The notes beneath the pieces are model-generated. The model was not told the origin of the DNA, ran no database searches, and saw only the letters and a program-made list of their open reading frames with translations. Both the position numbers and the translations under genes were made by a program. Positions 1 through 40,599 of a stretch of 64,000 nt of DNA are shown one piece after another. Source of the DNA: Macrostomum lignano. Its lineage: Eukaryota. Positions within the stretch are counted from its first letter, which is position 1; every line of letters starts with the position of its first letter. Location of the stretch: contig NIVC01000027.1 of assembly GCA_002269645.1 (NCBI GenBank), forward strand, positions 496,001-560,000, written 5' to 3'.

Positions 1-876
1 CATGGCTTGTTAGTAACCAACCAGGAATATCATGGCAACAGGAATTATTTATAATTAGTATGTATTCTTAAAAATATTAATTTTTGTATTACAAGTTAGT
101 AATATTAATGATGTTAATGTTTACGAAGCACTGTTGTATTTTTAGGAGCTTAGTATATTAAGGAAATGTTAGTAGTAGCGAACGGCAAGAGTGCCCTTCC
201 TAGACAGTGAATAGTTGTTTGCGTGGGGCCAATCCGTTTTTCAGACTCTTGGGTCGGTCTCGGATTCTAGACTAAAGTCTAAAAAAGCAGATACACGACC
301 CTACCCAGACCATATAAAATTCTAGATAGCTATCTAAGTGAAGGATTTCATACTCGTACGTGGCATCCGAAGTTATACCAAACTGAACTGCTTCGAGCTT
401 GGCTAAACTTCTCTCCCGGTCTGAACAAAAGCTTTCTTCCTCTTACTTTGCTCTCCCCATTACTTCTCTTTCCAATGGCTAGCTGGACAGTGCGTAGCTA
501 GCTATAGCTATTTAATTTTTTTCTAACCCTTTCCAAGCCATTATATGCAGAAAAGACCCAGACCTGAAAAGTGGAACGCTTTCATAAGACCTAAATTTCA
601 CAACGCCTAAATTTCATATCGCCGCATTAATTTCACAACGCCTAAAATATCTGCTGCCTCCTTCATCAGATCGGCTAAATTTCAAATTTCAGTTATAGGT
701 CTCAAGACTTCCTTGCCCAGTCACATGCACCAACCTACAATCAGTATGAGTGCCTGATTATTAATTAGATAGCTAGCTAGCTAAACTATAAGCGGCTTTG
801 AGTAGTTATGCATTGGCTTGTTAAAATAAGTGAATAATTTAAGTTAGCACAGTGCAGTGATACAACATTTCGCTGA

Positions 877-3800
877 TTACTTGACCTGAAAAGCGAGTAG
901 TTGATGCTCTAGTTTGTTCCTAGTACCTGACAGATCGCTTTCCTCAAACCAGATCCGCTCAGATCTTCGTATTGACGTCGAAATCTTTGGGTCTTGTAGT
1001 TGACATACTTCATGGCGTTGAAGCCACGAAACATCTTCGACTTCAGGAAAGTGAAAGTGCGGCATTCCACGAGCTCGCCAGTCTGCCAGGCTCAGAGATA
1101 GGTAGGCAACCTTCAGCTCGTGCCCACTGTCGATGCTTCGCAGCTCGCTGACTTTTCCTAGGTAGAATTTCCAGGAATTGCCGATCGTTGCAACTGCCGC
1201 GAGAACCCAAGCGCCCGGATTAATTTCTGGAAGCTTCATAGTTCGAATCACGCCACTGCTAGCGTCTGTTCCAGCCGAGTCACAGCTAGTGTCCGTTGCA
1301 CTTGGCCCTGCGGCAGAACCTAAGCTGGCGCACTGTACAGACAACAGCGGCATGTAATGATGCTCTGGAATGTGAGCCACCAGTAGAGGACCACCGGTCG
1401 GCTTCGTCTGCAATGGTTCAATAACTACAGATGGCTTTGGTGTGGCATGCAAGTTCTTGACTTTTTCCAACGCAGTGGGTTGGAAAATATGAATTTCACG
1501 CTTCAATATATAGCTAGTAGACAGCACTACAATATTGTCGACGTAGGAAGATGGCTTGCGCATGTTGTCCAGGTAGGTAATCAGATCCATCCCAGATTCG
1601 TTGAAGTCTGAAATAGAAACCTTCAAAAATTCTGGGTTCATTAGTTCGGTGCACGCCAAAGTGCGGAGTCTTATAGAGTTTTCAACAATGCCTTCCTGGG
1701 AAAGCAGTTGGCAAATAGAGTCAAAAAAGCAACTGCCATCAGCAGCAGCATCACCCAAGATGCACCCTAGCCTCTCGCCAATCAAGCGCAGTTTAGATTT
1801 TGCATTCTGCAATTCAGCCACTGGATTGAGACTTCTAATCTGGGCCATCTTCTGTAGCTGCCGCTGCTGTGCTGCTGTGGCCTTGTTTTTTCGCTTCAGC
1901 TGGCGCTCCTTGGCATTTTGATCGCGCCGATCGTCGATTTCTCGCTTCTGGATTTCTCTTTGACGGAGAACTTCCAGAAACTTCGGGCTGGTCAATTCAG
2001 GCGTGCCCGCTTCCCTCGCAATCGAAAGCCGCTGTCGCTTAGGCTGATTAGCTTTTGGCTTAGGCTGCGGTGTTTCAGGATGGTTGTATTGGCGAGCCAC
2101 TGAACGTACAATTTCAAGCGTTGAATTCGGTGAAGACTTTAGAGTCGGAGAGAGGGCACTTTGATCGGCATCTAAATCAACGCTAGCGGCGCTCGCTGAG
2201 CAGCTTGGCGCATCGTCATCGCCTTGGACAGCCGAGGTGGCGTTGCCGCTCGGCGCCTCGCCATCGCCTTGGACAGCCGAGGTGGCGTTGCCGCTCGGCG
2301 CCTCGCCATCGCCTTGGACAGCCGAGGTGGCGTTGCCGCTCGGCGCCTCGCCATCGCCTTGGACAGCCGAGGTGGCGTTGCCGCTCGGCGCCTCGCCATC
2401 GCCTTGGACAGCCGAGGTGGCGTTGCCGCTCGGTGCCTCGCCATCGCTTTGGACAGCCGAGGTGGCGTTGCCGCTCGGTGCCTCGCCATCGCTTTGGACA
2501 GCCGAGGTGGCGTTGCCGCTCGGCGCCTTGCCATCGCCTTGGGCAATCGTTGTCGCGGTCGCACCCACTTGCTGGCTGGCCAAACTGGAGGCAACGTACA
2601 ACTTGTCGTATAGTAAGGCTTCCGGGTTGAATGGAAAGAGGCCACACACTCGAAACCCGGACTTTACGTTGGCAAAGGAGACTGACTCAGCCAAAGAGGA
2701 CGAAAACAGTCGTACAAAGTCCGTATTACACAGACCTCCAGCTGAATCTGGCCTCGCTCGCCGCGCAGTGAAATCGTTCCAAGCGGCCTTAACTGATCGG
2801 AAGACTGCAACATCCAGAGGCTGCATTACATGCGTTGCGTTTGGGACTAGGCCAAAAATGTAGACCTGTTTAATAATTTTAGAATTAAATAAATATCTAT
2901 GAATTGTTAGCTGATGGAAGAAAAGATAAAGAGATTATCAATTAAAACAAGATATACAATACCTGACAGAAAGATCAGAATGGAACATAAAATATACTAG
3001 CTAGTTTTTTTTACTTTTCGGGAACTCATATAAATAGATAGATTACAGTTACAGCCTGCTTACATTTTCTTTCCTTAGCAGCTCCAACATCTCTGCATTA
3101 TGTCGCGAGTCGTGATTATCGCAAAATAAAATCACAGGTCTTGTGATTTTTTTCCGCTCCAGGTAGGGCAGGAATGTCTCCGTGACCCACTCCCGAAACG
3201 ACTCCCTGGTCATCCAACCATTCTTTGTCATGGAATAGTTGTAAATGTCCGGGACATTACGCCTCTTTCCTGCGAAAACAAAATGTGGTGGCAGCATAGA
3301 TCCGGAAGCCTGGATTGTAACCATGACGGTAGCATTCTTCTTTTCGCTGTCTACCGTCTTAGTGTACACAAATTTGGATCCCTTTCCAACGACCACTTTG
3401 CGGGACTTTCCAGCGAAGTAAGCGGCTGAAATGGCGATTCAGAAGCAGAAATGACTAAATGAAAGGGGAGGAAGCGATCCTTGAGGAAGGGTAAGCAAGT
3501 CTTCTAAAGCATTGAGCATCTAACTAGTTGAATAAAAATAACTAAAGTTGAATACATGGATCTCACCCGTCTCATCGCAGTTAAAAATCCTTTCCGGGTT
3601 CTCAAGTGCTTCGCGAAGATCTTTTCGATCAGGACGGGCCGCCTCAGTCTCGATGGTCCGAAACCACTGAAGTATCCGCTCTTTAGTGACTAAATCTCGG
3701 GCGTAGTTGACCGGTTGAGGTGTCCGGATTGACAGGACACTCTGGTGGCGCACCAAGAAGCGGTTTAGCCAACCTTCTGTCAGCGTCATTTTTTTACGGT

Positions 3801-3973
3801 TTTTAAACCGATCCGAGTTGTCACCAGAAGCGGAAATTTGCTTCAGGGCTAGAGTGGCCATCTCCAGGACCTGCGCTCTAGTCATTGGGATGTGCTGCCT
3901 TTGCGTTGCTAATAATGTCTCAACAAAGACAGCTTCCTCTTCGGCCGTGAAAACCTGCTTCTGCGAATTCTTT
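877..3973 (-). CDS. Spliced pogo-superfamily (DDE_1, DD35D) transposase with CENP-B-type HTH, fused to an OTU cysteine protease domain and a C-terminal Tudor-like domain; 5' end missing (about 918 aa recoverable)
   Basis: Exons 3567-3973, 3064-3425 and 877-2865 join in frame across GT-AG introns 3426-3566 (GTGAGA..TTTCAG, phase 1) and 2866-3063 (GTAAGC..AAACAG, phase 0). Motifs: [30 protein letters not shown] (HTH); IFNCDET; [20 protein letters not shown]; [10 protein letters not shown]; [25 protein letters not shown] with 35 residues between the last two Asp. OTU: [28 protein letters not shown]-terminus: [26 protein letters not shown]. Confidence 0.85.
2218..2541 (-). repeat. In-frame 45-bp coding minisatellite, about 7 copies, encoding ([15 protein letters not shown])n inside the transposase ORF
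   Basis: Unit gccttggacagccgaggtggcgttgccgctcggcgcctcgccatc read directly; 45 bp = 15 codons. Confidence 0.95.
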
Positions 3974-6900
3974 CTGCATCATACATGTATCAGTGCTGTC
4001 TAGTAGCCTGTAGAAATTTAGCCGCTAATCTGCTGATCCGGCTTGGCAAATTTGGGTTGAATTCGTTGACTTTCTCCTATCTAAATACACTATAGGATGG
4101 CTATTTCTCCGCCTTTGTATATCTTGGAAGCCGATTGACTTACTTAAACAATTCTTTCTGCATCATACATGTATCAGTGCTGTCTAGTAGCCTGTAGAAA
4201 TTTAGCCGCTAATCTGCTGATCCGGCTTGGCAAATTTGGGTTGAATTCGTTGACTTTCTCCTATCTAAATACACTATAAGATGACTATTTCTCCGCCTTT
4301 GTATATCTTGGAAGCCGATTGACTTACTTAAACAATTCTTTCTGCATCATACATGTATCAGTGCTGTCTAGTAGCCTGTAGAAATTTAGCCGCTAATCTG
4401 CTGATCCGGCTTGGCAAATTTGGGTTGAATTCGTTGACTTTCTCCTATCTAAATACACTATAGGATGGCTATTTCTCCGCCTTTGTATATCTTGGAAGCC
4501 GATTGACTTACTTAAACAATTCTTTCTGCATCATACATGTATCAGTGCTGTCTAGTAGCCTGTAGAAATTTAGCCGCTAATCTGCTGATCCGGCTTGGCA
4601 AATTTGGGTTGAATTCGTTGACTTTCTCCTATCTAAATACACTATAGGATGGCTATTTCTCCGCCTTTGTATATCTTGGAAGCCGATTGACTTACTTAAA
4701 CAATTCTTTCTGCATCATACATGTATCAGTGCTGTCTAGTAGCCTGTAGAAATTTAGCCGCTAATCTGCTGATCCGGCTTGGCAAATTTGGGTTGAATTC
4801 GTTGACTTTCTCCTATCTAAATACACTATAAGATGACTATTTCTCCGCCTTTGTATATCTTGGAAGCCGATTGACTTACTTAAACAATTCTTTCTGCATC
4901 ATACATGTATCAGTGCTGTCTAGTAGCCTGTAGAAATTTAGCCGCTAATCTGCTGATCCGGCTTGGCAAATTTGGGTTGAATTCGTTGACTTTCTCCTAT
5001 CTAAATACACTATAAGATGGCTCTTTCTCCGCCTTTGTATATCTTGGAAGCCGATTGACTTACTTAAACAATTCTTTCTGCATCATACATGTATCAGTGC
5101 TGTCTAGTAGCCTGTAGAAATTTAGCCGCTAATCTGCTGATCCGGCTTGGCAAATTTGGGTTGAATTCGTTGACTTTCTCCTATCTAAATACACTATAAG
5201 ATGGCTATTTCTCCGCCTTTGTATATCTTGGAAGCCGATTGACTTACTGAAACAATTCTTTCTGCATCATACATGTATCAGTGCTGTCTAGTAGCCTGTA
5301 GAAATTTAGCCGCTAATCTGCTGATCCGGCTTGGCAAATTTGGGTTGAATTCGTTGACTTTCTCCTATCTAAATACACTATAAGATGGCTATTTCTCCGC
5401 CTTTGTATATCTTGGAAGCCGATTGACTTACTTAAACAATTCTTTCTGCATCATACATGTATCAGTGCTGTCTAGTAGCCTGTAGAAATTTAGCCGCTAA
5501 TCTGCTGATCCGGCTTGGCAAATTTGGGTTGAATTCGTTGACTTTCTCCTATCTAAATACACTATAAGATGACTATTTCTCCGCCTTTGTATATCTTGGA
5601 AGCCGATTGACTTACTGAAACAATTCTTTCTGCATCATACATGTATCAGTGCTGTCTAGTAGCCTGTAGAAATTTAGCCGCTAATCTGCTGATCCGGCTT
5701 GGCAAATTTGGGTTGAATTCGTTGACTTTCTCCTATCTAAATACACTATAGGATGGCTATTTCTCCGCCTTTGTATATCTTGGAAGCCGATTGACTTACT
5801 TAAACAATTCTTTCTGCATCATACATGTATCAGTGCTGTCTAGTAGCCTGTAGAAATTTAGCCGCTAATCTGCTGATCCGGCTTGGCAAATTTGGGTTGA
5901 ATTCGTTGACTTTCTCCTATCTAAATACACTATAAGATGACTATTTCTCCGCCTTTGTATATCTTGGAAGCCGATTGACTTACTTAAACAATTCTTTCTG
6001 CATCATACATGTATCAGTGCTGTCTAGTAGCCTGTAGAAATTTAGCCGCTAATCTGCTGATCCGGCTTGGCAAATTTGGGTTGAATTCGTTGACTTTCTC
6101 CTATCTAAATACACTATAAGATGGCTCTTTCTCCGCCTTTGTATATCTTGGAAGCCGATTGACTTACTGAAACAATTCTTTCTGCATCATACATGTATCA
6201 GTGCTGTCTAGTAGCCTGTAGAAATTTAGCCGCTAATCTGCTGATCCGGCTTGGCAAATTTGGGTTGAATTCGTTGACTTTCTCCTATCTAAATACACTA
6301 TAAGATGGCTATTTCTCCGCCTTTGTATATCTTGGAAGCCGATTGACTTACTGAAACAATTCTTTCTGCATCATACATGTATCAGTGCTGTCTAGTAGCC
6401 TGTAGAAATTTAGCCGCTAATCTGCTGATCCGGCTTGGCAAATTTGGGTTGAATTCGTTGACTTTCTCCTATCTAAATACACTATAGGATGGCTATTTCT
6501 CCGCCTTTGTATATCTTGGAAGCCGATTGACTTACTTAAACAATTCTTTCTGCATCATACATGTATCAGTGCTGTCTAGTAGCCTGTAGAAATTTAGCCG
6601 CTAATCTGCTGATCCGGCTTGGCAAATTTGGGTTGAATTCGTTGACTTTCTCCTATCTAAATACACTATAAGATGACTATTTCTCCGCCTTTGTATATCT
6701 TGGAAGCCGATTGACTTACTTAAACAATTCTTTCTGCATCATACATGTATCAGTGCTGTCTAGTAGCCTGTAGAAATTTAGCCGCTAATCTGCTGATCCG
6801 GCTTGGCAAATTTGGGTTGAATTCGTTGACTTTCTCCTATCTAAATACACTATAAGATGGCTCTTTCTCCGCCTTTGTATATCTTGGAAGCCGATTGACT

Positions 6901-9876
6901 TACTTAAACAATTCTTTCTGCATCATACATGTATCAGTGCTGTCTAGTAGCCTGTAGAAATTTAGCCGCTAATCTGCTGATCCGGCTTGGCAAATTTGGG
7001 TTGAATTCGTTGACTTTCTCCTATCTAAATACACTATAAGATGACTATTTCTCCGCCTTTGTATATCTTGGAAGCCGATTGACTTACTGAAACAATTCTT
7101 TCTGCATCATACATGTATCAGTGCTGTCTAGTAGCCTGTAGAAATTTAGCCGCTAATCTGCTGATCCGGCTTGGCAAATTTGGGTTGAATTCGTTGACTT
7201 TCTCCTATCTAAATACACTATAAGATGACTATTTCTCCGCCTTTGTATATCTTGGAAGCCGATTGACTTACTGAAACAATTCTTTCTGACGTTGACTTTC
7301 TCCTATCTAAATACACTATAAGATGACTATTTCTCCGCCTTTGTATATCTTGGAAGCCGATTGACTTACTTAAACAATTCTTTCTGCATCATACATGTAT
7401 CAGTGCTGTCTAGTAGCCTGTAGAAATTTAGCCGCTAATCTGCTGATCCGGCTTGGCAAATTTGGGTTGAATTCGTTGACTTTCTCCTATCTAAATACAC
7501 TATAAGATGGCTCTTTCTCCGCCTTTGTATATCTTGGAAGCCGATTGACTTACTGAAACAATTCTTTCTGCATCATACATGTATCAGTGCTGTCTAGTAG
7601 CCTGTAGAAATTTAGCCGCTAATCTGCTGATCCGGCTTGGCAAATTTGGGTTGAATTCGTTGACTTTCTCCTATCTAAATACACTATAAGATGGCTATTT
7701 CTCCGCCTTTGTATATCTTGGAAGCCGATTGACTTACTGAAACAATTCTTTCTGCATCATACATGTATCAGTGCTGTCTAGTAGCCTGTAGAAATTTAGC
7801 CGCTAATCTGCTGATCCGGCTTGGCAAATTTGGGTTGAATTCGTTGACTTTCTCCTATCTAAATACACTATAGGATGGCTATTTCTCCGCCTTTGTATAT
7901 CTTGGAAGCCGATTGACTTACTTAAACAATTCTTTCTGCATCATACATGTATCAGTGCTGTCTAGTAGCCTGTAGAAATTTAGCCGCTAATCTGCTGATC
8001 CGGCTTGGCAAATTTGGGTTGAATTCGTTGACTTTCTCCTATCTAAATACACTATAAGATGACTATTTCTCCGCCTTTGTATATCTTGGAAGCCGATTGA
8101 CTTACTTAAACAATTCTTTCTGCATCATACATGTATCAGTGCTGTCTAGTAGCCTGTAGAAATTTAGCCGCTAATCTGCTGATCCGGCTTGGCAAATTTG
8201 GGTTGAATTCGTTGACTTTCTCCTATCTAAATACACTATAAGATGGCTCTTTCTCCGCCTTTGTATATCTTGGAAGCCGATTGACTTACTTAAACAATTC
8301 TTTCTGCATCATACATGTATCAGTGCTGTCTAGTAGCCTGTAGAAATTTAGCCGCTAATCTGCTGATCCGGCTTGGCAAATTTGGGTTGAATTCGTTGAC
8401 TTTCTCCTATCTAAATACACTATAAGATGACTATTTCTCCGCCTTTGTATATCTTGGAAGCCGATTGACTTACTGAAACAATTCTTTCTGCATCATACAT
8501 GTATCAGTGCTGTCTAGTAGCCTGTAGAAATTTAGCCGCTAATCTGCTGATCCGGCTTGGCAAATTTGGGTTGAATTCGTTGACTTTCTCCTATCTAAAT
8601 ACACTATAAGATGACTATTTCTCCGCCTTTGTATATCTTGGAAGCCGATTGACTTACTGAAACAATTCTTTCTGCATCATACATGTATCAGTGCTGTCTA
8701 GTAGCCTGTAGAAATTTAGCCGCTAATCTGCTGATCCGGCTTGGCAAATTTGGGTTGAATTCGTTGACTTTCTCCTATCTAAATACACTATAAGATGACT
8801 ATTTCTCCGCCTTTGTATATCTTGGAAGCCGATTGACTTACTGAAACAATTCTTTCTGCATCATACATGTATCAGTGCTGTCTAGTAGCCTGTAGAAATT
8901 TAGCCGCTAATCTGCTGATCCGGCTTGGCAAATTTGGGTTGAATTCGTTGACTTTCTCCTATCTAAATACACTATAAGATGACTATTTCTCCGCCTTTGT
9001 ATATCTTGGAAGCCGATTGACTTACTTAAACAATTCTTTCTGCATCATACATGTATCAGTGCTGTCTAGTAGCCTGTAGAAATTTAGCCGCTAATCTGCT
9101 GATCCGGCTTGGCAAATTTGGGTTGAATTCGTTGACTTTCTCCTATCTAAATACACTATAAGATGACTATTTCTCCGCCTTTGTATATCTTGGAAGCCGA
9201 TTGACTTACTGAAACAATTCTTTCTGCATCATACATGTATCAGTGCTGTCTAGTAGCCTGTAGAAATTTAGCCGCTAATCTGCTGATCCGGCTTGGCAAA
9301 TTTGGGTTGAATTCGTTGACTTTCTCCTATCTAAATACACTATAAGATGACTATTTCTCCGCCTTTGTATATCTTGGAAGCCGATTGACTTACTTAAACA
9401 ATTCTTTCTGCATCATACATGTATCAGTGCTGTCTAGTAGCCTGTAGAAATTTAGCCGCTAATCTGCTGATCCGGCTTGGCAAATTTGGGTTGAATTCGT
9501 TGACTTTCTCCTATCTAAATACACTATAAGATGACTATTTCTCCGCCTTTGTATATCTTGGAAGCCGATTGACTTACTGAAACAATTCTTTCTGCATCAT
9601 ACATGTATCAGTGCTGTCTAGTAGCCTGTAGAAATTTAGCCGCTAATCTGCTGATCCGGCTTGGCAAATTTGGGTTGAATTCGTTGACTTTCTCCTATCT
9701 AAATACACTATAAGATGACTATTTCTCCGCCTTTGTATATCTTGGAAGCCGATTGACTTACTGAAACAATTCTTTCTGCATCATACATGTATCAGTGCTG
9801 TCTAGTAGCCTGTAGAAATTTAGCCGCTAATCTGCTGATCCGGCTTGGCAAATTTGGGTTGAATTCGTTGACTTTC
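3966..9876. repeat. 184-bp tandem array, about 32-33 near-identical copies, abutting the 5'-most transposase exon
   Basis: aattctttctg recurs at 3966, 4150, 4334 (period 184). Units differ mainly at ggatggctat/agatgactat/agatggctct/agatggctat and cttaaac/ctgaaac. One unit has a net 86-bp deletion at 7288-7290. Confidence 0.97.
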
Positions 9877-10163
9877 GCCTAACTAGATTCACAGCTGCTT
9901 ACTCCCCTTCGCTACACAAAATGCTACTTTGCTTTTTGTATAAGTATTAGTTCTAGTAGTGTGTATCGAATTTTTTGTTTTATAATGTTATCTTCGAAGT
10001 TGGAATGGAGTAAAAAATAGATTTCGTGAAAGTGAAAGTCTTTTATTTTCCTACAAGTTTTCCTGCTGTCTCATTGCTCGAAATTAGTACAAGAGACAAA
10101 AGTGATGCAAGAAATTGTAGAAATAGGGCTAAACGGTGGATTTCCTGCCTTTAAATGAGATGG

Positions 10164-10630
10164 AAAAAATGACGGTAGCTTGTCAAAAATGACGGTTGCT
10201 GGGACCGTCAATTTTGCCAAAGTGTAAAAAACGTTACCGTCACTTTTGCCGCCTTATATTAATACGAATTCGTATTATCCTTCCATATAACCGATGCATT
10301 TGGATGCTAAATGTTTTCTATTTTCAATAAAGTACTTAATTAATGCCGTAGAGCCAGCCATTAGGTGTTTAGAAGGCTTTATGTAAACACAGTTTTTTGG
10401 ACGAAAAAGTCAAACATATTTTTTTCCCGCATTTTTAGTGAGAATATTTTTTTCAGTTTCAAATAGCTGATTGAAAGAGAAACTATGCTCTATAAAATTT
10501 TATGTTTTTGAAAGATTTTAGTTTACTCTTTTATTTGTATATTCTATTTTTTAATTATGCTTCTCCAACAAGTAGATAAAGCAAATACATTTTTTGGCAA
10601 AAATGACGATAGTATGGTAAAAATGACGGT
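10164..10630. other. Cluster of six AAAATGACGGT-like motifs in both orientations; possible transposon subterminal binding sites
   Basis: Forward copies at 10164, 10185, 10599 (one mismatch) and 10619; reverse copies (accgtcaatttt, accgtcactttt) at 10204 and 10236. Confidence 0.5.
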
Positions 10631-11224
10631 ATTTTACGCTAACAAAACCTAGGATGAGTGTCTGCCTGTGCGTATGACTGCGTCCACACTTGTGTTTACT
10701 TTCAAAAACTGTCTCAAAACTGTCCAATCCGGAAGTTAGAGTGTACAAATAATACTATTGGGTCAAATTTTGCAGAAGTTTAAGGCTAAATTTTAAATCT
10801 AAGCTATATGGCGCTACTGTCATTATTTTTAAGTAGCCAGTGTTGTGTATTGCACTATATATTGTATCAAACTTTCTAAACTAAGTGTGCACGCGCAACC
10901 AATTATATGTCTTCGCAAGTAATGAGATGTTACTTATCAGGTACATCGATTTCCTACAGAATTTATTGATTGTTATTTACACTACTAAATATCACCAAAC
11001 CGACAGACTTTAAAATAAAATTGTATCGCCTGGCAAAAGTTACAATATATTTTGCACGTGGCATGTGTGAACAGTCATTTTCCTAGAGCACATTTCATCA
11101 AGTAAATGATAAAATTCTATCCAGACTTTAAAATACTCGCTTTGCTTTCAAAAGTATATGTACATGTAAATTACACGTTAAACGTATTTGGAATACTCAG
11201 GATACATAAAATATTCAGAGTCAA

Positions 11225-11340
11225 ATGAGCAGGATCCATAAAGAGGTACTCTTAGCAATAAGCAGTATTTATAAAGTGCTCATAGAGAAGAGCAGGATTC
11301 ATAAAGAGGTACTCATAGCAATGAGCAGGATCCATAAATC
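11225..11340. repeat. Degenerate ~33-bp tandem repeat, 3-4 copies
   Basis: gagcaggat(c/t)cataaagaggtactc(t/a)tagcaat recurs. Confidence 0.7.
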
Positions 11341-11674
11341 AATAAAAATCTGAAGTCTACGATAGTATAAATTTAAATATGCTTTAATTAAACTAAGCAA
11401 AGAAACAAGTCGTATTAGCAATAAACAAAGTCATGTTCAAATTTTTATGCTGCAATTTTATTGATGTACTTTGTAAATGTACATAGGCTCGTATATCAAA
11501 TATTTTCATTTTAGAAGGTTTATAGTTATAGTATTTTCTAAATAGTACAGTATGGACTCTCCGATGGGTGCAAATGCATGTAAGGTGATTTTGTTTTCAG
11601 GAGGAGCGTAAATCAGTTTATCAATTTTTATCCAGCTTTTTGACTTTCTTACAAAACCCGCGTAAGATTATTGA

Positions 11675-12157
11675 TCAGCCATGGTGTCCAGAGGCTCCCC
11701 GTGTCCTTGCAGCGTTGGCCCTCAGTCTCGTCCTCAGCCGCGACCTTCTCGCCTGATTCGGGTCTGCTGCCATCGATTCGGCCAACTCGTTCAACATCCG
11801 GATTCGTTTGAAGTTTTCCGACTTTTGAAAATTGAAAGCATGAGCTCTGACAGCGCTACCCGCGGATTGCTGCTTCAGTTTTGCCTGACCAGCGCCGCTT
11901 GCAGAAGCTCTGCAGGGACAGGTGCACACTGTGCAACTGCATCGTTGGTGCACTTTCTTACCTGTCAATGACTTCATGCTGCGACTTCGATTTCCCAGCC
12001 TGTCAGCGGCCGCAGCTGCAGCTGTCAGCAATCTGGAGTGTCGCTCCTGCCGCTGTCGCCTTCGCAGGTAGTACTGGCGAGCATCCGCTAGGCGACGTTG
12101 TAGAACTCTGATCGGTTGAACTTCGGACGACTGGTTGCTGCTGCTGTCTGCTGGCAT
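11675..12157 (-). CDS. Hypothetical 160-aa basic protein (orphan ORF)
   Basis: ATG-initiated GC-rich ORF in AT-rich flanks; Arg/Ala-rich with a CSCTVCTCPC cluster; AATAAA on the minus strand near 11460. No recognisable domain. Confidence 0.4.
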   Translation of the reverse strand: MPADSSSNQSSEVQPIRVLQRRLADARQYYLRRRQRQERHSRLLTAAAAAADRLGNRSRSMKSLTGKKVHQRCSCTVCTCPCRASASGAGQAKLKQQSAGSAVRAHAFNFQKSENFKRIRMLNELAESMAADPNQARRSRLRTRLRANAARTRGASGHHG

Positions 12158-12488
12158 GCTTGCTTCGAATTATGGTTTATACCGCCGAACAAGAAACTCA
12201 TGTATAATAAATACTTCATTTACGGAGGGAGCTTCTTTGGCCATAGAAATCAGGTAGAATCTATACGTAGGCCATGTACAATATTTTGAATTCGTTGGTA
12301 ATAATTAGGTTACGACATCGCAACGAGTGAATCATCTATATATTAACAAAAGGAGCAGCTCAAAAAATCTGCTTGTTTTGAACTACTGTGTAGAACTTCG
12401 AGACTCTGGAAAGCTGAGTCACTTTTACTGTGTTTCAAAGGGTTTATTAACGTATTTTGTACAAATGTTTCAAATGGTTCAAATGGTA

Positions 12489-12540
12489 CAGTGGCGTAGC
12501 CAGGAATTTCAATTGTGGGGGGGGGCGGGTTGGCCTGGCT
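12489..12540 (+). mobile_element. Solo hAT-like terminus (CAGTGGCGTAGCCAGG...)
   Basis: CAGTGGCGTAGCC followed by a G-run is typical of small animal hAT/MITE ends; no partner end seen. Confidence 0.3.
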
Positions 12541-23346: not shown

Positions 23347-26300
23347 TTAGAACGAAGAGCCCTCGGGCGGCTGGGACAGCTTGGCATTCTCTCTAGCGGT
23401 CATCTGGCGTCTCAGCTCTTGCAGCACAGTCTTGATGTGGTAGCCCCTGCGCCATTGAGCCAGACTGGGCAGCTTCCTGCCGTCCACCAGCCCTGTAGTC
23501 TCGTGTACACCGTTCATCTTGATGCGACTGATGAAGCGCACGGTTGGAGGCTAGTCAGGGGTGGTTGGATGTGAACGGTATATGGCTATGTGAATTCTGG
23601 CGCACTTTTCTCTCGAACTCTGAACTACCCAAATACTGATATTCGAATTCTGAATGACCTGAGTACTGATATTCGAATTCTGAATTACCTGAGTACTGAT
23701 ATTCGAACTCTGAATTACCTGAGTACTGATATTCGAATTCTGAATTACCTGATATTCGAATTCTGAATTACCTGAGTACTGATATTCGAACTCTGAATTA
23801 CCTGAGTACTGATATTCGAACTCTGAATTACCTGAGTACTGATATTCGAATTCTGAATTACCTGAGTACTGATATTCGAACTCTGAACTACCCAAATACT
23901 GATATTCGAATTCTGAATGACCTGAGTACTGATATTCGAACTCTGAATTACCTGAGTACTGATATTCGAACTCTGAATTATCTGAGTACTGATATTCGAA
24001 CTCTGAATTACCTGAGTACTTATATTCGAACTCTGAATTACCTGAGTACTGATAATCGAACTCTGAATTACCTGAGTACTGATATTCGAACTCTGAATTA
24101 CCTGAGTACTGATATTCGAACTCTGAATTACCTGAGTACTGATATTCGAATTCTGAATTACCTGAGTACTGATATTCGAACTCTGAATTACCTGAGTACT
24201 GATATTCGAATTCTGAACTACCTGAGTACTGATATTCGAATTCTTTAACTAGCCCGAGCTGTAATCCATAAAGTACATTAATAAAGAAACAGGCGCCTCT
24301 CACCTGTTCAGGGTAGTTGGGACCGCAAGTGATGTGCAAATTGTACATTCGATTGTCATATGGCGTCTTTGGTGGGCCCAGAATCATGCCAATCCAATTA
24401 GTAAGAGTCTGGTCATTGTCATTCTCAAGGCCCCAGCTTATTGTGCCATCTTGAGTGCCTTTCTGACCTTCGTCCAGTTCTTCCAACAGGTAGAAGCTGC
24501 GCGGCACTTCAACTGGTATAGGAATGATAAAATGATGAAACTTGTTTTAAATATTTTAATATAATGGTAAAATAAGGTGGTTCTTGCTATTGAGCTTACT
24601 AAGCTTATAACTACTATTATAGAGCTTCCATATATTTCACTAGTGTTGCCAAATCGTGCAAAGAAATTTGTTTCATTACTTAATTACCAAGAAATCTTTC
24701 TATTAAGTCAGCACAATTATTCCCATAGTCTTCTGCTAATAATAATAACAATATCCACATAGCATCATGCCATTAATGTTCTGCTTATTTGCATGGCAAC
24801 TAAATTATAATTAGTATAATATACACTTAAATGTGTTTAATAGTTAGGCATGGTACATGCTAAAAATAGTAGGTCCCTTCCTACATATTATAATCACAGA
24901 TACTAGAATAACCAGATGGGCCACTCAGCACATTTGCGTGTAAGCTACTTTCAATTCAGTAGTAAGTTAAGCGGAAGCATTTTAATGATTTTTTAAAGCC
25001 AAAGCTCATTTATTGGCTCTTACCCCCCATTTAAACCTCCAACTGCCCTTTTCCACTCAACCCCTGACCTGCCCTACCCCAATTTTTATTGCCTTTCTCG
25101 GAATTTCCAGCCTAAAGCTGCCATGTATGTACATTCAGTGGACTGGCTAATGTACATTATTGCTTGCTTAACCAATTAGCAAGTTGTTTATGCTTGCAAG
25201 CTTGGTCTTTCAGCTGCCTTTATTTTTTATAAAATAGCTTACATGTTCTTCTTTGCTACTGAACTGAAAGTAGAAAGCTGTTTTACTAAGTATATATGCC
25301 TGAGTGGTCCATCTAGTTCTTTTATTATCTGTGATTAATTAAGCTACTATGTAAATTAGCATAGCATTATTGGTATGGCACTAAATAGATAATATTGTTG
25401 TTATTAGAATGGTATATGCTAAGAGTAGCAGGCCCATTCCTACATATATAATTTAGTTGCTATACTAATAAGCAGAGCATTATTGGCATGGTGCTATGTG
25501 GATAATATTGTCATTATTGGCATAAGACCATAGTAATAAGCATTGCATTTTAGTAATGACAAGTGTCCAAGCAGTCCCCACTCAAGAAAGTGTGGTGAAA
25601 ATTCTAGCATACATAAACAAAATGTGCATGAAGTGGCACATACTATGCACAAGAAAAATGTTTATAAAAAAATTAAAAGTGCATAGTAGTGCCTAGCTAA
25701 AGCTGAGTAGCAATATTTAGCTTTACAATGGGTCATCCAAAATGTATAATCTATATGTCTACATGAAATATGTTTTTAGATCATTTTCCAGGGCATAATT
25801 TGATGTGTCTATTAGATAATAGTTTCTTAGTTAATTAAACAAATTATTAAAATATAAAATAGCATATTATCATAAAGTTTAAGTTGATTTTTTTGATAAA
25901 TTTTAATATAAGCTAAAATAAAACCAATTTTTTACTTAAAAAGCCCAAAAAAGCTAAAAACATTGATTTGTTATTTTTACTTTTAATTTAATCCAAATTT
26001 TATTGGATTTTCTAAAGTTACTAAGCATTGGTGCTCTAGCTATGCATATGTCAAAAAACAAATATAGGCCCTAGCACACAATTTGTAACTTTAACATTGG
26101 TATAATGCATACCAAAAATATGCTAAAATATATTCCTGCATAGACATGACACATTACTAAGTACGAGTATGAGGGATACTCCAAAAGTTTTGCAATTCAA
26201 CCACTTGCGCAAGTTGCACAATCTTCAAAACCAACTCTCTGTACAATAAACATGTACATAGTCTCCACCTCAAATTTCAAGTGAATTCATACATATATGC

Positions 26301-29300
26301 CTGCTCAGCCCCCAGTCAAAGTCAAAGACTCCTTAACTGTAGCTCGTATAGCTGCAGCCATGGAATTGATTTGTGAGCAGAATCGGCTACTAATTTGGTA
26401 CTGCCACAAGCGAAAGCTCACGGCGCTTGAGACTCATGCCAAGCTACTAGCAACATTGGAGGCTCAAGCGCCGTCATATGCTATAGTTACACGCTGGTAC
26501 CGCGAGTTCCAGGCCGGCAAGACCAGCTTTTCTGATGACCCCTGGCCCGGGAGACCACTGACAGCAGTGATGGAGGAAAACATTGCTGCAGTGCAGGAGC
26601 TGATTCATCAGGATCCGCAAATCACCATGGACATGTTAGCTATGAATGTTGGCATTGGATTGGCAATGGTCAATACGATTCTACACAATCACCTGAGAGT
26701 CAGGAAGCTTTGTGCCCAATGGATACCCCAAATCCTGACAGATGCTCAGAAACAGGCCTGCATAGAGTTCTGTCAGTTTCTCATTGATTGATATGAGCAC
26801 GGGAGCCATCAGCACTGCTCTGAAGTCATCACTGGTGATGAGACGTTTCTCTATCATTTTGACGTCAAGAGAAAGCATAGCAGTGCAGAGTGGGTACCGG
26901 AAGGTGGGCAACGACCCCTGAAAGCAAGGTGGTCCTGGTCCCAGGGCAAGCGGATGTTTGCCATCTTCTTTGACCCGGTTGAAAAACTTAGCGGGCCTCA
27001 GTGGGCTTTTGAGCGGGCCATTAGCGGGCCGAAGCGAATCGGCCCGTATTACAGGCCTTTTACAACAAATTGGCCCGCTGAAACCCGGCCTGCTCTGAAG
27101 CCCGCTGATTAGCCCGCTAATGGCCCGCTCGAAACCGATCCGCAGATCGGCCCGCTGATTAGCCCGCTGGTTGGCCCGCTCACTGGCCCGTTCTAAACCG
27201 GCCCGCTGCGCGGCCCACTGGTTGGCCCGCTGGTTGGCCCGTTCTAAACCGGCCCGCTGGTTGGCCCGTTGGTTGGCCCGCTCAATGGCCCGTTCTAAAC
27301 CGGCCAGCTGCTCGGCCCACTAGTTGGCCCGCTCACTGGCCCGCTGGTTGGCCCGTTCTAAACCGGCCCGCTGGTTGGCCCGCTGGTTGGCCCGCTCAAT
27401 GGTCCGTTCTAAACCGGCCAGCTGCTCGGCCCACTAGTTGGCCCGCTCACTGGCCCGCTGGTTGGCCCGTTCTAAACCGGCCCGCTGGTTGGCCCGCTGG
27501 TTGGCCCGCTCAATGGTCCGTTCTAAACCGGCCAGCTGCTCGGCCCACTAGTTGGCCCGCTCACTGGCCCGTTCTAAACCGGCCCGCTGGTTGGCCCGCT
27601 GGTTGGCCCGCTCAATGGTCCGTTCTAAACCGGCCCGCTGCACGGCCCGCTGGTTGGCCCGCTCACTGGCCCGATCTAAACCGGCCCGCTGCTCGGCCCA
27701 CTAGTTGGCCCGCTGGTTGGCCCGCTGGTTGGCCCGTTCTAAACCGGCCCGCTGGTTGGCCCGCTGGTTGGCCCGCTGGTTGGCCCGTTCTAAACCGGCC
27801 CGCTGGTTGGCCCGCTCAATGGTCCGTTCTAAACCGGCCCGCTGCACGGCCCGCTGGTTGGCCCGCTCACTGACCCGTTCTAAACCGGCCCGCTGACTTG
27901 TTGTGAACGTGATAATCTTATCAAATGGTGTATAAACTTGTACGTGTAAACTTTTGCGGTGTCTTGGCGCTCGGGCAATTATTTGATTTGTAGAGCACTA
28001 ATGCTGTCCAATAAACTGTGCATACACAAATTTCATGATGACATGTACAATGAGTGTGTCAATTTTATTTATTTTTATCGCCTCATACGCCCACAGCAAT
28101 TTGTATATCGCGCTACGTTGTGACGTATGTACTTCAGATATCACCCAGTTTAGTGTGAAACCATTGCTTCGCCCTTTGTTGGCTCTTGGGCTAAGATAGC
28201 AAACTGATTCAAACTGATAGTAGAATGATGGTATTTGTTAATTAACAATTTTAGTACGGATTCTCTCCTAGTCACACAGGTATTCAATTTCTTCATTTTC
28301 AGTCACTTGAACGACTAAAAGAGCTCGACAAGAAGTCAGTTGCCATCGCACGGCGCTTCAGTCGACTCAAAGAATCACTCAGACAGACAGTTGCGGCGAC
28401 AGCCCGTCCGACACGAGCAGAAGCTTCAGTGAGCCATTTACTAACTGCAACTCGGACCACTCATGACGTACCAACCACTCATGACGCGCAAACAAGCAAC
28501 AGTGTAGCCAGTGTTGGCAGCAGCTGGCAGCCAGCATTGGCAACAGGTGGATGTAGCAGTGGCGTCCAGACTCCCATGGTCGTCGAGCCTACCGGCTCGC
28601 AGTATTCAGACAACGACGATGAGGACGTATCTTCTAGATCTATCGTTGAGGAACCAGGCGAAGAAGCTCCAGATGACGACTATTGGAGTGGCGCTCCAAT
28701 GGCGTTGGACGCCATCGAGCAGTGCGACGATTGTGAGGACGCTCCCTAAAGCCCACGACGCCACTTCAACGGCGCTAATCGGCTCCGATATGAGCACGGC
28801 CGTGTCCGCGGAGCCGACCGGCTCTACTACAAAACGGAAAGCCGAAGCCAATGCCGATAGGCATCGGCATCGCGAATCTCTATCTGACTCATCGAGCGAG
28901 CCAGATCTAGAGTCGAGAAAGGAGATGCGGCATCGCAATAGGGCCGGTGGACCACCAAAGGCTAAGGCGCCCCGTGTCATGGTCATCCACAAAGCTATTT
29001 GGTGGGTGCTCACGTACACTAACACCGGCAAAGTTATGGCCATCGACCAAAAGTGCATCGTCGACCCGGACCCCGTAACACGAACAGTCGGCGTTAAAGT
29101 ACAAGTACGGACTGGCCATAGCCCGAGTGCAAAAACTTTCGACGCTTTCCTGACAGCCGGGCCTTTTCCGGATAGGAAGTCCACCTACGCTGCCCGGGAC
29201 AACCTGGCCAAATCGGCAACTTTAATGGGGTGGGGCTCTGCAGGCGCCTATAGGCGCGTGCAACCCGTTATAAATCACCCTGATGCCGGATGCCCGCGCT

Positions 29301-32300
29301 GCCGGAACCTCGACATCGAATGTCGTGACCTACGTGAGGCAAATCGAGAAGAGACGGACAAGCGGGGGGCTGCTGAAACTGATGCAGCCAACCTGAAGAT
29401 TGAGAATGAGGCCATTCGGTCTGAGAATGAGCAGCTGAAACAGGAACTGGCACAGAAAGATGACGTGCTGCAAAAGTATGACACCCGTCTTGCAAGTTCC
29501 ATGCATGCGAATTCTCAGATACTTGAGACGCTACGGTTCGTCACGGCGCAGGCGCGGTCGGCCAACGAGGTGGCACGTAGAACTACAGAATCATGCAGCC
29601 ACCTCGAAAGTCTGGTGCGCTCTATTAGTGACTACGAAACGTTGGTCGCTGGTTCGAGTACTGCACCCGGAGAGTCGTCATCAGCTGCTGCCGATATCGG
29701 CATCGATGCCGAGCCAAGTGGCTCGACGTCATCGCAGCTTACCAGTGGATTTGTGAGCCACGCCATTGCGATGGCAATCGCAAATATATCGACCTCCATG
29801 ATGGGCAACCAGTCGTCGAAACGTGTGCCGCTGATAGCTGCATTTCCCGGTGTCACGGTTTGTCCGTTGGCCCTGACAAAATTGGAAGCCGCAGCAGTTG
29901 AAATGCGAAAAGCCGCAAACAATAACAAGATTCGCAGACGAGCCATTCGGCTAGTCATACTTGCTGTGTGCCCTGAGCAAGACCTGCGAACCGCATCTTG
30001 GGCTGGTCGACAGGTGAAAGGAGAGAAAGCGGCCAACCGGGTTGAGCTGGATAGCTCCAAGAAGGCGGCCATACGGTCCTACCTGGCCAGTAAACTGGTC
30101 TCAGAGGAGGACAAAAAACTATTCACAGACGCCGAACTCGGCGAGGTCTTCCGCCCTACAGTCAGGACCGTACGGGATCGGGAGAGTTCGTCTGCGAAAA
30201 GTGGCGCCTGCGCAGAAAATGAAGAGGAAAGCGAGTAGTAGAGACTAGGCCTCGATTGTGGTGACAATTTTTCACTATGCTGACAAACATTACTTTGGGT
30301 TGAGAATAGACTCTGAGGCTAGGGTTGCTCTTTTATATATTAGCTCTTTTAGCTCAGATAGCTCTATTAGCTATATTAGCTCTTTTAGCTATTCGTGCCA
30401 CCATGAAAAAATACTAGTATTCAATTTTAACCTTAACATCTCTTTGTTTTTACCAGATCCGATGAAGTATATTCCCGGTTTTTATAAAAAAGCTAATTGT
30501 ACGGCTCATCGGTCTGACTTAGAAATCTCATGCTTATTTTGCTTCTTTACTTATTTTTTTTGTTCGTTCAGCGGGCCAACCAGCAGGCCGGTTTAGAACG
30601 GGCCAATGAGCGGGCCAGCCAGCAGGCCGGTTTACAACGGGTCAATGAGTGGGCCAGTGAGCGGGCCAACCAGCGGGCCAACCAACGGGCCAACCAGCGG
30701 GCCGGTTTAGAACGGGCCAACCAGCGGGCCAACCAACGGGCCAGCCAGCGGGCTGGTTTAGAACGGGCCAATGAGCGGGCCAGCCAGCAGGCCGGTTTAG
30801 AACGGGTCAATGAGTGGGCCAGTGAGCGGGCCAACCAACGGGCCAGCCACCGGGCCAAACAACGGGCCAGCCAGCGGGCCGGTTTAGAACGGGCCAGTGA
30901 GCGGGCCAGCCAGCGGGCCAACCAACGGGCCAACCAGCGGGCCGGTTTAGAATGGGCCAACCAGCGGGCCAACCAACTGGCCAGCCAGCGGGCCGGTTTA
31001 GAACGGGCCAATGAGCGGGCCGGTTTAGAACGGGCCAATGAGCGGGCTGGTTTAGAACGGGCCAATGAGCGGGCCAGCCAGCAGGCCGGTTTACAACGGG
31101 TCAATGAGTGGGCCAATGAGCGGGCCAACCAACGTGCCAACCAGCGGGCCGGTTAAGAACGGGCCAATCAGCGGGCCAACCAACGGGCCAACCAGCGGGC
31201 CGGTTTAGAACGGGCCAATGAGGGGGCCAATCAGCGGGCCAGCCAGTAGGCCGGTTTAGAACGGGCCAATGAGCGGGCCAGCCAGCAGGCCGGTTTACAA
31301 CGGGCCAATGAGCGGGCCAACCAACGGGCCAACCAGCGGGCCGGTTAAGAACGGGCCAATCAGCGGGCCAACCAACGGGCCAACCAGCGGGCCGGTTTAG
31401 AACGGGCCAATGAGGGGGCCAATCAGCGGGCCAGCCAGTAGGCCGGTTTAGAACGGGTCAATGAGTGGGCCAGTGAGCGGGCCAACCAACGGGCCAGCCA
31501 CCGGGCCAAACAACGGGCCAGCCAGCGGGCCGGTTTAGAACGGGCCAACCAGCGGGCCAGCCAGCGGGCCCAGAAGCGGGCCGTGGAACGGGCCGATTTG
31601 AGAGACTCGTTGATTTGGAAAAATGAGCGGGCTTTTAGAGCGGGCTTTTCTGACACGAAGTGGCCGATGAGCGGGCCAATTTCAATGGGCTAATCCAGTA
31701 TTTTTTTCAACCGGGTGACTCACAAGGCGTGGTGGCGATGGTGAAGCTGGAGGGTCAAGCTATAGTCACTGCTCAACGGTATACTGAAGAGTGCTTGCCT
31801 GTCGTGATCGACAGCGTGACCCAGAGGGAGCCAAGGACGGGAATGCGAGGACAGAAACTTTACCATGACAATGCCCCCGCCTACACGGCTGCTGCAACTT
31901 GAGCATTCCTGGACCAAGAGGGCATTTCAACGCTACCACATCCGCCTTACTCACCAGACCTTGTTACCTGCGACTTCTGGCTCTTTCCAGAAATCAAAAA
32001 GTCGCTTAGGGGGCGCAGGTTTCAGTCCGACAAGGAGCTGGAGCAGGCGGCAAAGGAGGCGATTGATGGCATCCCAATTGAAGCCTTCCAGGGCTTCATG
32101 AACAAGTGGCTCGGATGAGTGCACAAGTGTTTGCAGTTCCGGGGAGCCTACTTTGAAGGATTGTAATAGAAAAGTTTGGCAAAATTAACTTTAAATAGTT
32201 GAATTGCAAAACTTTTAGAGTATCCCTTGTATAACCAAGCATTATAGCATTATAATTTAAACTTCAAGTCCAAAATTATGGCATTCACTATAATCAACAG

Positions 32301-38384: not shown

Positions 38385-40599
38385 CTAAACACAGTTGAAA
38401 GCACTGGATCCGTGCTTATTCCTCACGTAGACAATGCTGTCAATAACCTGGCCGCCTTTGTCAACAGACACCTGCTCCAGCATCAGGTGAGTGGCATTCG
38501 CCACTGTCATCCGCGTGTAGCCGTAGTCGTCGCTGCGGAAGGCGGACCAGGGCAGGCCGGCCGGGATGAACGGGTCCTCGCCCTCCACGCAACCAGCCGA
38601 GCCGGTGATCACGTGAACTGGCGCCGGCGGATTATCGTAGGGATTATCCGAGCTGGTGGTTGAGTTGCACACCTTCTGATTGTAGACAGGCCACATTCGC
38701 TCGTAGGAGTGCTCGTGCGCGCCGAAAATCAGATCGACGCCGTACCTGTAGAACAGCTGCTCCACTCCCAGGATGTAGTCGCTGCCGAAAATACGACTCC
38801 GCTGCTTGCTGCCCACTGGAAATCCGGTTCGAATCAGGTTGTCCGCATTCGTGCAGTGCTGGGGATCGTCGCTGTTTGAGCAGTACATCGGCCGGTGGGC
38901 CATGGCGATGATCCACGGCCGGTTGGCTCGATTCTGATTGGCCCGCTGCAGATCCTCTTCCAGCCACTGGAACTGGTAGACTGCCTGCTTCCAGCCGTAG
39001 TCCAAGTAGTAGTAGAACTCCGAGCTGAATGAGATCTGCGGAGATAAGTTTTGTGTTACGATTATGTGTTGCCAGCGGCCCAAGCTCAATTCAGTCACAA
39101 TAATTTGTGGCTAAATTAAAATCTCTCGGCTTTACTATGCTCGTGCAAATATCGTCCTTGAGGGCCCAATTCCCCCAAGGCACAGTGAAGTGTACATGCC
39201 TAACGATAAATAAAGTTAGGGCTGCTGTACACTACTGTGTGAGTGTGTGCCTGTGTGTATGACTGCGTACGTATCCACGCGAGCTTGTGTGCCTGCTCAG
39301 GGGAGTCGGCGGAATGAGCAGTAAAAGGCTCGTTCACACTGCCATCAAATGAGACCAAATTCGTGTGATCACACCATTTGTACATCCAATTTGATTCGTT
39401 TGTACATTGGTGGTGTGATTTAGTGGCTCGTTAGCATCTATCTAACAGTTATCACCTTGTATAACACGCAACACATTCTCTTTCTAAACAGGGGACGTGA
39501 GATATTGTACGCCAGCATATCGAACAAGCAAGGTGACACTATTTATTGGTCTGAAAGATGAATCTGATTAAGATAATACTCGTCATAGTGTTACAGGCGC
39601 TAGAGTGTCACACACATGAAGAACCGTACCATAAGAGTATTTCATCAAGCACCTAGAAATAGCTAGAATTCAAGCCCCTGATTAAAATATTGTACTTTAA
39701 CACCTGACACCTGATCGAGGATGGCTTTTAGCCGGCTTTAAGACATGGACCTCATGAATCAACCAACAAGGTGAAGTCGACGATTATATAATCTTAAATC
39801 CATACCATAATCAAGCAAGCTAAGCTTTAAACCGACTATGGTCAAATGTCAAAGGTCAAAGGTCAAAGGTCAGAGGTCACGCACATGCACTCACCACATG
39901 CACGGGTCCATAGTCGAAGCTAAAAAAGCTGCCTTCCCCATCGCCGCCAGGCATGGAGAATCTTCGCCGATAGTTGCTGAAATTGTAGGCACTCTCGTGA
40001 TTGCCCGGACAGGTCATGTACGGCACGTACGCCGCAATGGGCTCCACCTGACGCATGAACTCATCACCAACCAGGGCATTGTTGGTGTCCATGTTGTAGG
40101 CGAAATCGCCAACGTGTAGCACCATGTCGAAGTCGCCGGATTGCGCCTCCTTCTGCAGGAAGGGAATCGACTTGCCGTTCGTGTTGCCCATGTCGCCATA
40201 GACAGCGAATCTGGCTGGCCAGTCGGAGCCAGACTTTGTAGCCGTGAACAGGAACACGTCCGACCAGCCCAGCTCGCTGCCCACCCGGTACACGTACCGC
40301 TGTCCAGGCCTCAGACCGGACATCACGGCTCGGTGGATGTAGATCACCCGCTTCGCCGAACCACCGTCGACAAATTTCTCTTGGACGCCAGAGGCGGATC
40401 TGTCGAATCTGTTGGTGCCGTAGTCTACGGAGGTACTGTTAGTGGGAGACTGGGTCACCCAGGTGACCACCATCTGGGTGGGGTCATTGGTGACAGACAG
40501 GTGCACCTGCTCCGGCTGAGGTGACAGTTGGCCCGTGGTCAAACTGATGGCTAGGCCAAGCAGCAGCAACAGACGCTGGGAAATTGCTCTAACAAGCAT
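38385..40599 (-). CDS. ACP7: Secreted purple acid phosphatase (ACP7-like), 2 exons, 451 aa
   Basis: Exon 1 39895-40599, exon 2 38385-39035, phase-0 intron 39036-39894 (GTGAGT..CCGCAG). Signal peptide; PEQVHLS..MVVTWVT (FN3-like N-domain); metal-ligand motifs GDMG, GDFAY, GNHE, MAHRPMY, GAHEHSYER; PVHVITGSAG. AATAAA at 38164-69 (minus). Confidence 0.95.
39156..39330 (+). mobile_element. Internal fragment of the same SINE family in the ACP7 intron
   Basis: cccccaaggcacagtgaagtgtacatgcctaa..gcctgctcaggggagtcggcggaatg matches 34560-34700. Confidence 0.85.
39853..39879 (+). promoter_or_regulatory. Four AGGTCA half-sites in DR1 spacing (candidate nuclear-receptor element)
   Basis: AGGTCA-a-AGGTCA-a-AGGTCA-g-AGGTCA, 15 nt inside the ACP7 intron donor. 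Confidence 0.35.

Follow-up and report, generated by a model that had tools for sequence, protein, structure and literature searches.

The stretch of DNA considered here, which we call the window, comprises 64,000 nucleotides of the genome of Macrostomum lignano (NCBI GenBank assembly GCA_002269645.1, contig NIVC01000027.1, positions 496,001 to 560,000 of the forward strand). Positions 877–3965 of the window, on the minus strand, are probably a copy of a pogo DNA transposon that is truncated at its 5′ end and that belongs to a family whose transposase includes an OTU deubiquitinase domain as an integral part. Judged by its sequence, the encoded enzyme is a cut-and-paste transposase of the pogo type. 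A preliminary description of the window had noted a pogo DD35D transposase, an OTU domain and a C-terminal beta domain in one reading frame, and a frame of 918 codons in which Pfam detects both DDE_1 and OTU bears this out.

The gene is assembled from three exons (3567–3973, 3064–3425 and 877–2865), which join in frame to give the 918 codons and end with a TAA stop codon at 877–879. The two introns, at 3426–3566 and 2866–3063, have GT and AG ends, and either of them would introduce an in-frame stop codon if it were retained. The GC content is 47–54% in the exons compared with 26–38% in the introns. The last exon alone holds 663 codons without a stop, which in sequence of the same composition has a chance of about 5e-13. 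A homologue without introns, encoded on a contig that we refer to as L001 and describe below, aligns free of gaps over both splice junctions and so confirms them. The GT and AG ends, the stops on retention and the L001 alignment all agree with the in-frame splicing of both introns, as first described. The parts of the gene are as follows, from its 5′ end to its 3′ end.

3966–3973, minus strand: junction with a 184-bp satellite; the first three codons (K-N-S) are satellite-derived.
3567–3965, minus strand: element-derived part of exon 1, with the DNA-binding region of HTH_Tnp_Tc5 type and the first catalytic Asp (NCDET, D133); truncated at the 5′ end.
3426–3566, minus strand: intron 1, 141 nt, GT..AG, 38% GC.
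3064–3425, minus strand: exon 2, which encodes the central DDE_1 core and, in FCDNH, the second Asp of the triad (D238).
2866–3063, minus strand: intron 2, 198 nt, GT..AG, 26% GC.
2600–2865, minus strand: start of exon 3, where the C-terminal portion of DDE_1 is encoded together with the third Asp of the triad (D274, in QPLD).
2203–2542, minus strand: 45-bp tandem repeat in the linker, in frame, 15 amino acids in 7.6 copies with 97% matches.
1795–2202, minus strand: remaining linker, including a basic, coiled-coil-like stretch (...KRKNK).
1330–1794, minus strand: OTU domain of the cysteine-protease, deubiquitinase type, as assigned by Pfam, the AlphaFold2 (AF2) model and Foldseek.
877–1259, minus strand: predicted C-terminal beta-barrel and helix, with the stop codon, as assigned by a profile of the C-termini of OTU-less pogo proteins and by AF2.

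The transposase core is well defined. The 918-residue product matches the Pfam family DDE_1 (PF03184) with 51.4 bits (E 1.2e-13) against a cut-off of 22, and its closest relatives are DDE_1 proteins, the best matches being to animal pogo-like proteins at 29–35% identity. The catalytic triad is formed by D133 (NCDET), D238 (FCDNH) and D274 (QPLD), at columns that are invariant among 59 relatives. The spacing of 35 between the second and third Asp is that of a DD35D enzyme, and the preliminary description had correctly placed the third Asp in QPLD. It had also proposed that the spliced product be compared with four Pfam families, of which DDE_1 and OTU score above their cut-offs; HTH_Tnp_Tc5 reaches 17 bits and falls under its cut-off of 22.2, and there is no match to Tudor. 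The region assigned to HTH_Tnp_Tc5 is still 45% identical to its counterpart in L001.

The existence of the OTU domain had been made to depend on a profile match, and Pfam provides one above the curated cut-off: OTU (PF02338) scores 27.3 bits in the whole protein and 31.1 bits when the domain is taken alone, with the cut-off at 23.3. The OTU fold is confirmed at the level of the predicted structure. The AF2 model has a predicted local distance difference test (pLDDT) score of 88.2, and Foldseek matches it to OTUD5/DUBA with an E value of 9.7e-9 and a template-modelling (TM) score of 0.69–0.72, and also to yeast Otu2, OTUD3 (TM 0.78, normalized to the target) and OTUD1. A profile that includes the window OTU matches OTUD3 at E 2e-24; the OTU and barrel as a single sequence, when compared with the PDB, gave only a marginal match to wMelOTU (E 0.87).

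The domain that follows the OTU places the latter inside the transposase rather than at its end. No Pfam family matches the C-terminal 127 residues at E values up to 1, and a Pfam scan across 12 members with this domain gave only stray matches below threshold (HAS-barrel, MORC2 chromo-like). Its AF2 model is a beta-barrel followed by a long helix (pLDDT 89.5). The Foldseek matches of the model are weak, with a best E value of 0.026 and TM scores of 0.33–0.43, and the top ones are to the SGF29 Tudor domain, the chromo-barrels of MSL3, RBBP1 and Tip60, a BAH domain and chains of bacterial ribosome structures. The ribosomal chains are presumably SH3-like-barrel proteins of the large subunit. The term Tudor-like, under which the domain was first described, thus amounts to a weak likeness of fold class to SH3-like, Tudor and chromo-barrel folds. 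Aromatic residues are conserved in the barrel, namely W/F at strand 1, F/Y-Y before a Gly, and F-x-F/W-P. The relationship that identifies the domain is found among pogo proteins themselves. In eleven OTU-less pogo relatives the C-terminus is a beta-rich domain that follows the pattern F/W-V-x-V ... Y-x-G-x-I ... F-x-F/W-P, and a hidden Markov model (HMM) made from these eleven C-termini scores the window C-terminus at 29.1 bits (E 2e-7), compared with 7.3 for the best of 4000 shuffles. When the whole window is scanned in six frames with the same HMM, this open reading frame (ORF) is the only match. On the strength of this sequence relationship, the barrel is taken as the native C-terminal module of this pogo lineage, which would have been present before the OTU was captured. 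Since the barrel is homologous to the C-termini of OTU-less pogo proteins, the OTU is internal, lying between the transposase linker and the C-terminal module. In the OTU-less relatives (P0001–P0049) a basic linker is followed, in the same place, by one of two C-terminal domains, a PHD finger or the barrel, and this alternation suggests that the two are interchangeable modules for tethering to chromatin. The barrel, with no Pfam family of its own, seems to be a C-terminal module of animal pogo transposases that has so far gone undescribed.

A second instance of the fusion came to light when the OTU and C-terminal segment was compared exhaustively, by HMMER, with 1.84 billion representative proteins. 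There were six matches, and the best of them, P0061 (E 1.3e-24), has both DDE_1 and OTU in one ORF according to Pfam. A word-index protein search with the OTU and barrel segment alone gave no match. P0061 is encoded on L001, a contig of 3191 bp from the Logan assembly of run SRR30276804. The order of domains on L001 is an HTH_psq-like N-terminus, the HTH_Tnp_Tc5 region, DDE_1, a long linker, OTU and then, after a frameshift, the same C-terminal domain as in the window. The identity between the window copy and L001 is 45% in the HTH region, 47% in the DDE core, 28% in the linker, 45–47% in the OTU and 33% in the barrel. The OTU is therefore as constrained as the catalytic core, the two being equal at 47% where the linker stands at 28%. 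L001 carries a stop codon, the frameshift, an Asp-to-Asn change at the second catalytic Asp of the DDE core and an Asp-to-Tyr change in the Cys-loop of the OTU, with the Cys and His of the OTU kept. A 19-bp unit (CGTTGCTTAAYTACTTRAA) is repeated in tandem seven times in the first 134 positions of the contig, immediately before the start codon of the transposase, and these repeats may be subterminal binding sites. Both ends of the contig are cut off, and a search of it for terminal inverted repeats gave none.

The linker between DDE_1 and OTU in the window copy gives some reason to ask whether the two domains belong together. It is 275 residues long, of low complexity and disordered, and it is lengthened by the in-frame 45-bp (15-residue) repeat at 2203–2542 (7.6 copies, 97% matches). 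The repeat is absent from L001, which points to a recent expansion within the coding frame. With such a linker separating the domains, in a region that is extremely rich in repeats, a pogo copy might have come to lie beside or inside an unrelated OTU gene by chance, or been placed there by an error of assembly. The same order and a continuous ORF from DDE to OTU are, however, present in the independent L001 at 28–47% identity, and a protein identity of about 45% excludes L001 as a mis-assembled version of the same locus. Furthermore, no stop interrupts the 663 codons of the last exon, and what comes after the OTU is the C-terminal domain native to this pogo lineage. We conclude from the second instance, the domain-specific conservation and the embedded position of the OTU that the fusion is real and that both chance juxtaposition and an error of assembly are effectively excluded. 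The basic stretch of the linker at 1795–2202 resembles one of the type 'TSxxF + basic' in the OTU-less relatives, though not significantly; at 7.2 bits the match is no better than the best shuffle, and it was not used as evidence.

The 5′ end of the element is missing from the window. The first three codons of the frame as originally drawn come from the satellite that begins at 3966, so the frame has no proper start, and its first in-frame ATG is at 3885. Compared with L001, about 58 N-terminal residues, which there form a domain of the HTH_psq type, are lacking; tblastn of the whole window found no HTH_psq domain. With that domain the start codon, the 5′ untranslated region and the 5′ terminal repeat are also missing. 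A 184-bp satellite array (3966–9892, about 32 copies, 99% alike) begins exactly at the point of truncation, and the monomer sequence ...gatgcagaaagaatt reaches the junction with the element. The idea that the satellite lies inside an intron was rejected, as the missing N-terminal HTH_psq exon was not found beyond it. Derivation of the satellite from the ends of the element was also considered, and only chance matches of 9–11 nt to L001 were seen. No pair of terminal inverted repeats surrounds the element in window positions 1–12500, where the loss of the 5′ end makes such a pair impossible. Since the HTH_psq domain, the start codon and the terminal inverted repeats are all absent, the window copy is not autonomous; it is a 5′-truncated remnant that is unable to move by itself. 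The uninterrupted frame of 918 codons nevertheless suggests that the copy is young.

A domesticated chimeric gene had been suggested at the outset, that is to say a host gene in which a pogo transposase was recruited together with its OTU, in the manner of POGZ, POGK and CENP-B. Such a gene would account for a long intact frame, for two canonical introns with a typical contrast in GC content between exon and intron, for a single copy in the window and for domains that are conserved between two diverged sequences, and pogo transposases have been domesticated repeatedly (PMC7386202). It would not readily account for the absence of a start codon and of the N-terminal DNA-binding domain, with a satellite in place of the 5′ end, nor for the state of the only relative, whose frame is broken by a stop codon and a frameshift and whose catalytic residues are mutated, as in decaying transposon copies. 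Domesticated pogo genes are often without the catalytic DDD triad, which is intact in the window copy. Introns, moreover, are also present in autonomous transposons such as Ginger1 (PMC2836005). We consider domestication quite improbable on this evidence, and retain the reading of 877–3965 as a transposon copy.

Several observations do weigh against that reading, or against parts of it. No TA target-site duplication and no terminal inverted repeats were found for the window copy or for L001, and the mobility of the family is in consequence deduced solely from homology. The fusion is represented by two instances in all and both are defective, the window copy being without its 5′ end and L001 being decayed. 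The role of the barrel as a chromatin reader is suggested by weak fold matches and by positional analogy with PHD fingers. Finally, the OTU departs from known OTU enzymes at two positions. The residue two places after the catalytic His is Met in the window OTU and in L001 (HHYMPLL), compared with Asp or Asn in OTUD3 (HYD) and OTUD5 (HYN), and in the variable loop Tyr stands where Trp is conserved.

These substitutions bear on whether the OTU is a working protease. The motifs quoted in the preliminary description are all present in the translation: ADGSCFF with Cys631, EHHYMPL, and in the barrel WVLA..FYLGKV..VAYL. The Cys-loop reads ADGSC(631)FF, the variable loop MRKPSSYVD and the His-loop PEHHYMPL; D628-G-S-C631 and the H-H-Y at 757–759 align with the invariant Cys and His columns. 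The Asp/Cys/His triad, as it is defined for the OTUD4/Otu family (PMC4654579), is therefore kept, and to this extent the earlier impression of a catalytically intact domain holds, though not at the position after the His-Tyr, which has Met and not Asp or Asn. The nearest OTU relatives (P0062, P0063 and P0065) likewise have neither Asp nor Asn there. The Met and the Tyr would be in keeping with an OTU that has become a pseudo-enzyme, serving the transposase as a ubiquitin-binding or scaffold module with no protease activity. Loss of activity is frequent among OTU domains: no activity is seen in vitro with Drosophila Otu or with CG3251, and OTUD4 is able to serve as a scaffold (PMC4654579). Yet families that lose activity typically lose the Cys (PMC4654579), and the window OTU has retained Cys631 and Asp628 as well as the His-Tyr of its His-loop, just as the otherwise decayed L001 has retained Cys and His. 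We regard a pseudo-enzyme as unlikely, and protease activity of the window OTU as plausible from its sequence.

One of the OTU relatives just named, P0065 (Logan, 836 residues), is otherwise an unrelated protein; it has a C-terminal OTU (E 3.5e-8) as its sole Pfam match and, judging by its sequence, appears to be transposon-like. It may belong to another element family with a captured OTU.

If 877–3965 is the remnant of a pogo transposon, its history and the working of the complete enzyme can be pictured as follows. A single capture would have placed the OTU between the linker and the barrel that is native to the lineage, and the OTU would since have been kept under constraint at the protein level as strong as that on the DDE core. 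The HTH domains would bind the ends of the element, the DDD triad would excise and integrate it, and the C-terminal barrel, in place of the PHD finger of sister lineages, would tether the enzyme to chromatin. The transposase or the transpososome might be protected from turnover by the OTU, which would strip it of ubiquitin or a ubiquitin-like modifier. Alternatively, the OTU might deubiquitinate chromatin or repair factors at the break, such that repair is steered. A role of this kind is in line with what has been suggested for Ginger1 (PMC2836005). Both the removal of ubiquitin by the OTU and the reading of chromatin marks by the barrel are functions that we infer. A stronger version, in which the pogo lineage is active or was so recently, with an independently acquired working deubiquitinase and a chromatin-tethering barrel, is possible but doubtful.

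The pogo-OTU fusion is rare. An OTU is absent from all of the 60 nearest pogo proteins, and in a profile search with the alignment of the window protein and P0061 the latter was the sole protein with both DDE_1 and OTU. The same alignment identified eight loci in JGI metagenome contigs, all of them OTU-less pogo fragments in which a six-frame HMM scan found no OTU and no barrel, and it found nothing in IMG/VR viral contigs. Searches of the full text of open-access papers, among which Repbase Reports is not included, yielded no account of a fusion of OTU with a pogo or Tc1/mariner transposase, and in the 2020 survey of the pogo superfamily OTU is mentioned 0 times (PMC7386202). The preliminary description knew of no pogo-OTU fusion, and such fusions are indeed rare, with one other example and no paper found.

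We consider the finding to be of interest for two reasons. Firstly, unrelated transposon superfamilies have repeatedly gained ubiquitin or SUMO proteases, with OTU in Helitron-like elements and Ginger1, and Ulp1 in Ginger1 and also in Mutator-like elements, by which it has likewise been captured. Should the pogo case be correct, the capture of OTU would be convergent in at least three transposon superfamilies (Helitron-like, Ginger1 and pogo), and ubiquitin-dependent control of transposases by the host, or of break repair, would be a general barrier that mobile elements have to overcome. To our knowledge, nobody has shown what role the ubiquitin or SUMO protease of a transposon plays for its element. 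Secondly, among eukaryotic transposases the pogo and Tc1/mariner enzymes lend themselves most easily to reconstitution, both in cells and in vitro. The pogo-OTU family would therefore be a practical system in which to ask whether a transposon-borne deubiquitinase stabilizes the transposase, changes the repair of breaks or counters silencing by the host. That sister pogo lineages have either a PHD finger or a barrel in this place is, in addition, a hint that targeting in the clade may be guided by chromatin.

The window as a whole contains dozens of distinct minisatellite arrays, and an Rfam scan of it found no RNA gene. Its mariner and pogo relatives and its host genes have the character of an animal-like genome. 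An ORF of 575 residues without a Pfam family (28511–30238, plus strand) lies between inverted arrays of a tandem repeat of about 51 bp, at 27100–27895 and 30570–31600. The arms of these arrays are up to 249 nt long and 84–90% complementary, which gives the region 27100–31600 the look of a Foldback-type element. Just upstream of the left array is a fragment of a mariner-type transposase (26297–26791; HTH_48, E 2.9e-7). An exon at 23551–24507, on the minus strand, matches UQ_con (E 2.6e-7) and is similar to a variant of a ubiquitin-conjugating enzyme; it continues directly into a 30-bp tandem repeat of 21 copies, and a long repetitive ORF results. A host-type gene for a purple acid phosphatase, of at least two exons, is located at 38385–40599 on the minus strand, with Pur_ac_phosph_N, Metallophos and Metallophos_C domains. 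A 36-bp satellite of about 136 copies occupies 59072–64000, up to the end of the window.

It remains to compare the element with systems that are already known. With the pogo superfamily (pogo, Tigger, Fot and others; PMC7386202) it shares DDE_1, the DD35D triad and the HTH_Tnp_Tc5 region; it differs in having an OTU and, in the window copy, in being without HTH_psq and terminal repeats. The cellular enzymes OTUD3, OTUD5 (DUBA) and Otu2 provide the best structural and profile matches to its OTU, and have in common with it the D-G-x-C of the Cys-loop and the H-Y of the His-loop. These enzymes, however, have no transposase attached and are only 15–18% identical to the window OTU.

An OTU followed by a small beta-barrel is also the order found in Drosophila Otu, CG3251 and human OTUD4, and the preliminary description had drawn the parallel with Otu and OTUD4, taking the barrel to be Tudor-like. 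The likeness is superficial and confined to the order. As the barrel pre-exists in OTU-less pogo proteins, the sequence relationships make the shared order appear coincidental and convergent. In Drosophila Otu and CG3251, moreover, Ser replaces the catalytic Cys (PMC4654579), which the window OTU keeps.

Among mobile elements, the Helitron-like HLE1 and HLE2 have captured OTU repeatedly and independently, and have kept it stably in their coding region (PMC11417382). They differ from the element in the window in that they use a rolling-circle Rep/helicase and not a DDE enzyme, and their OTU is usually upstream of RepHel (PMC11417382). Ginger1 offers a further comparison. Its DDE transposases carry a C-terminal OTU or Ulp1, some of them a PHD finger, and the coding sequence often has one to four introns (PMC2836005); its authors considered that the OTU may be linked to ubiquitin-dependent DNA repair (PMC2836005). 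In both Ginger1 and the window element a cut-and-paste DDE transposase is followed, in one frame, by an OTU cysteine protease after the catalytic core. The core of Ginger1, however, is a DDE of the Gypsy-integrase type with an H2C2 zinc finger and a GPY/F motif, whereas that in the window is pogo DDE_1, and Pfam finds no match to an rve/integrase family in the window product. In addition, the OTU of Ginger1 is terminal, whereas that of the window is internal and has the barrel after it. Since Ginger1 and pogo are different superfamilies, the two captures are independent, and the likeness in architecture is one of analogy. Fusion with OTU is known in other transposon superfamilies, and the pairing with pogo is an independent capture of OTU that adds a third DNA-transposon superfamily.

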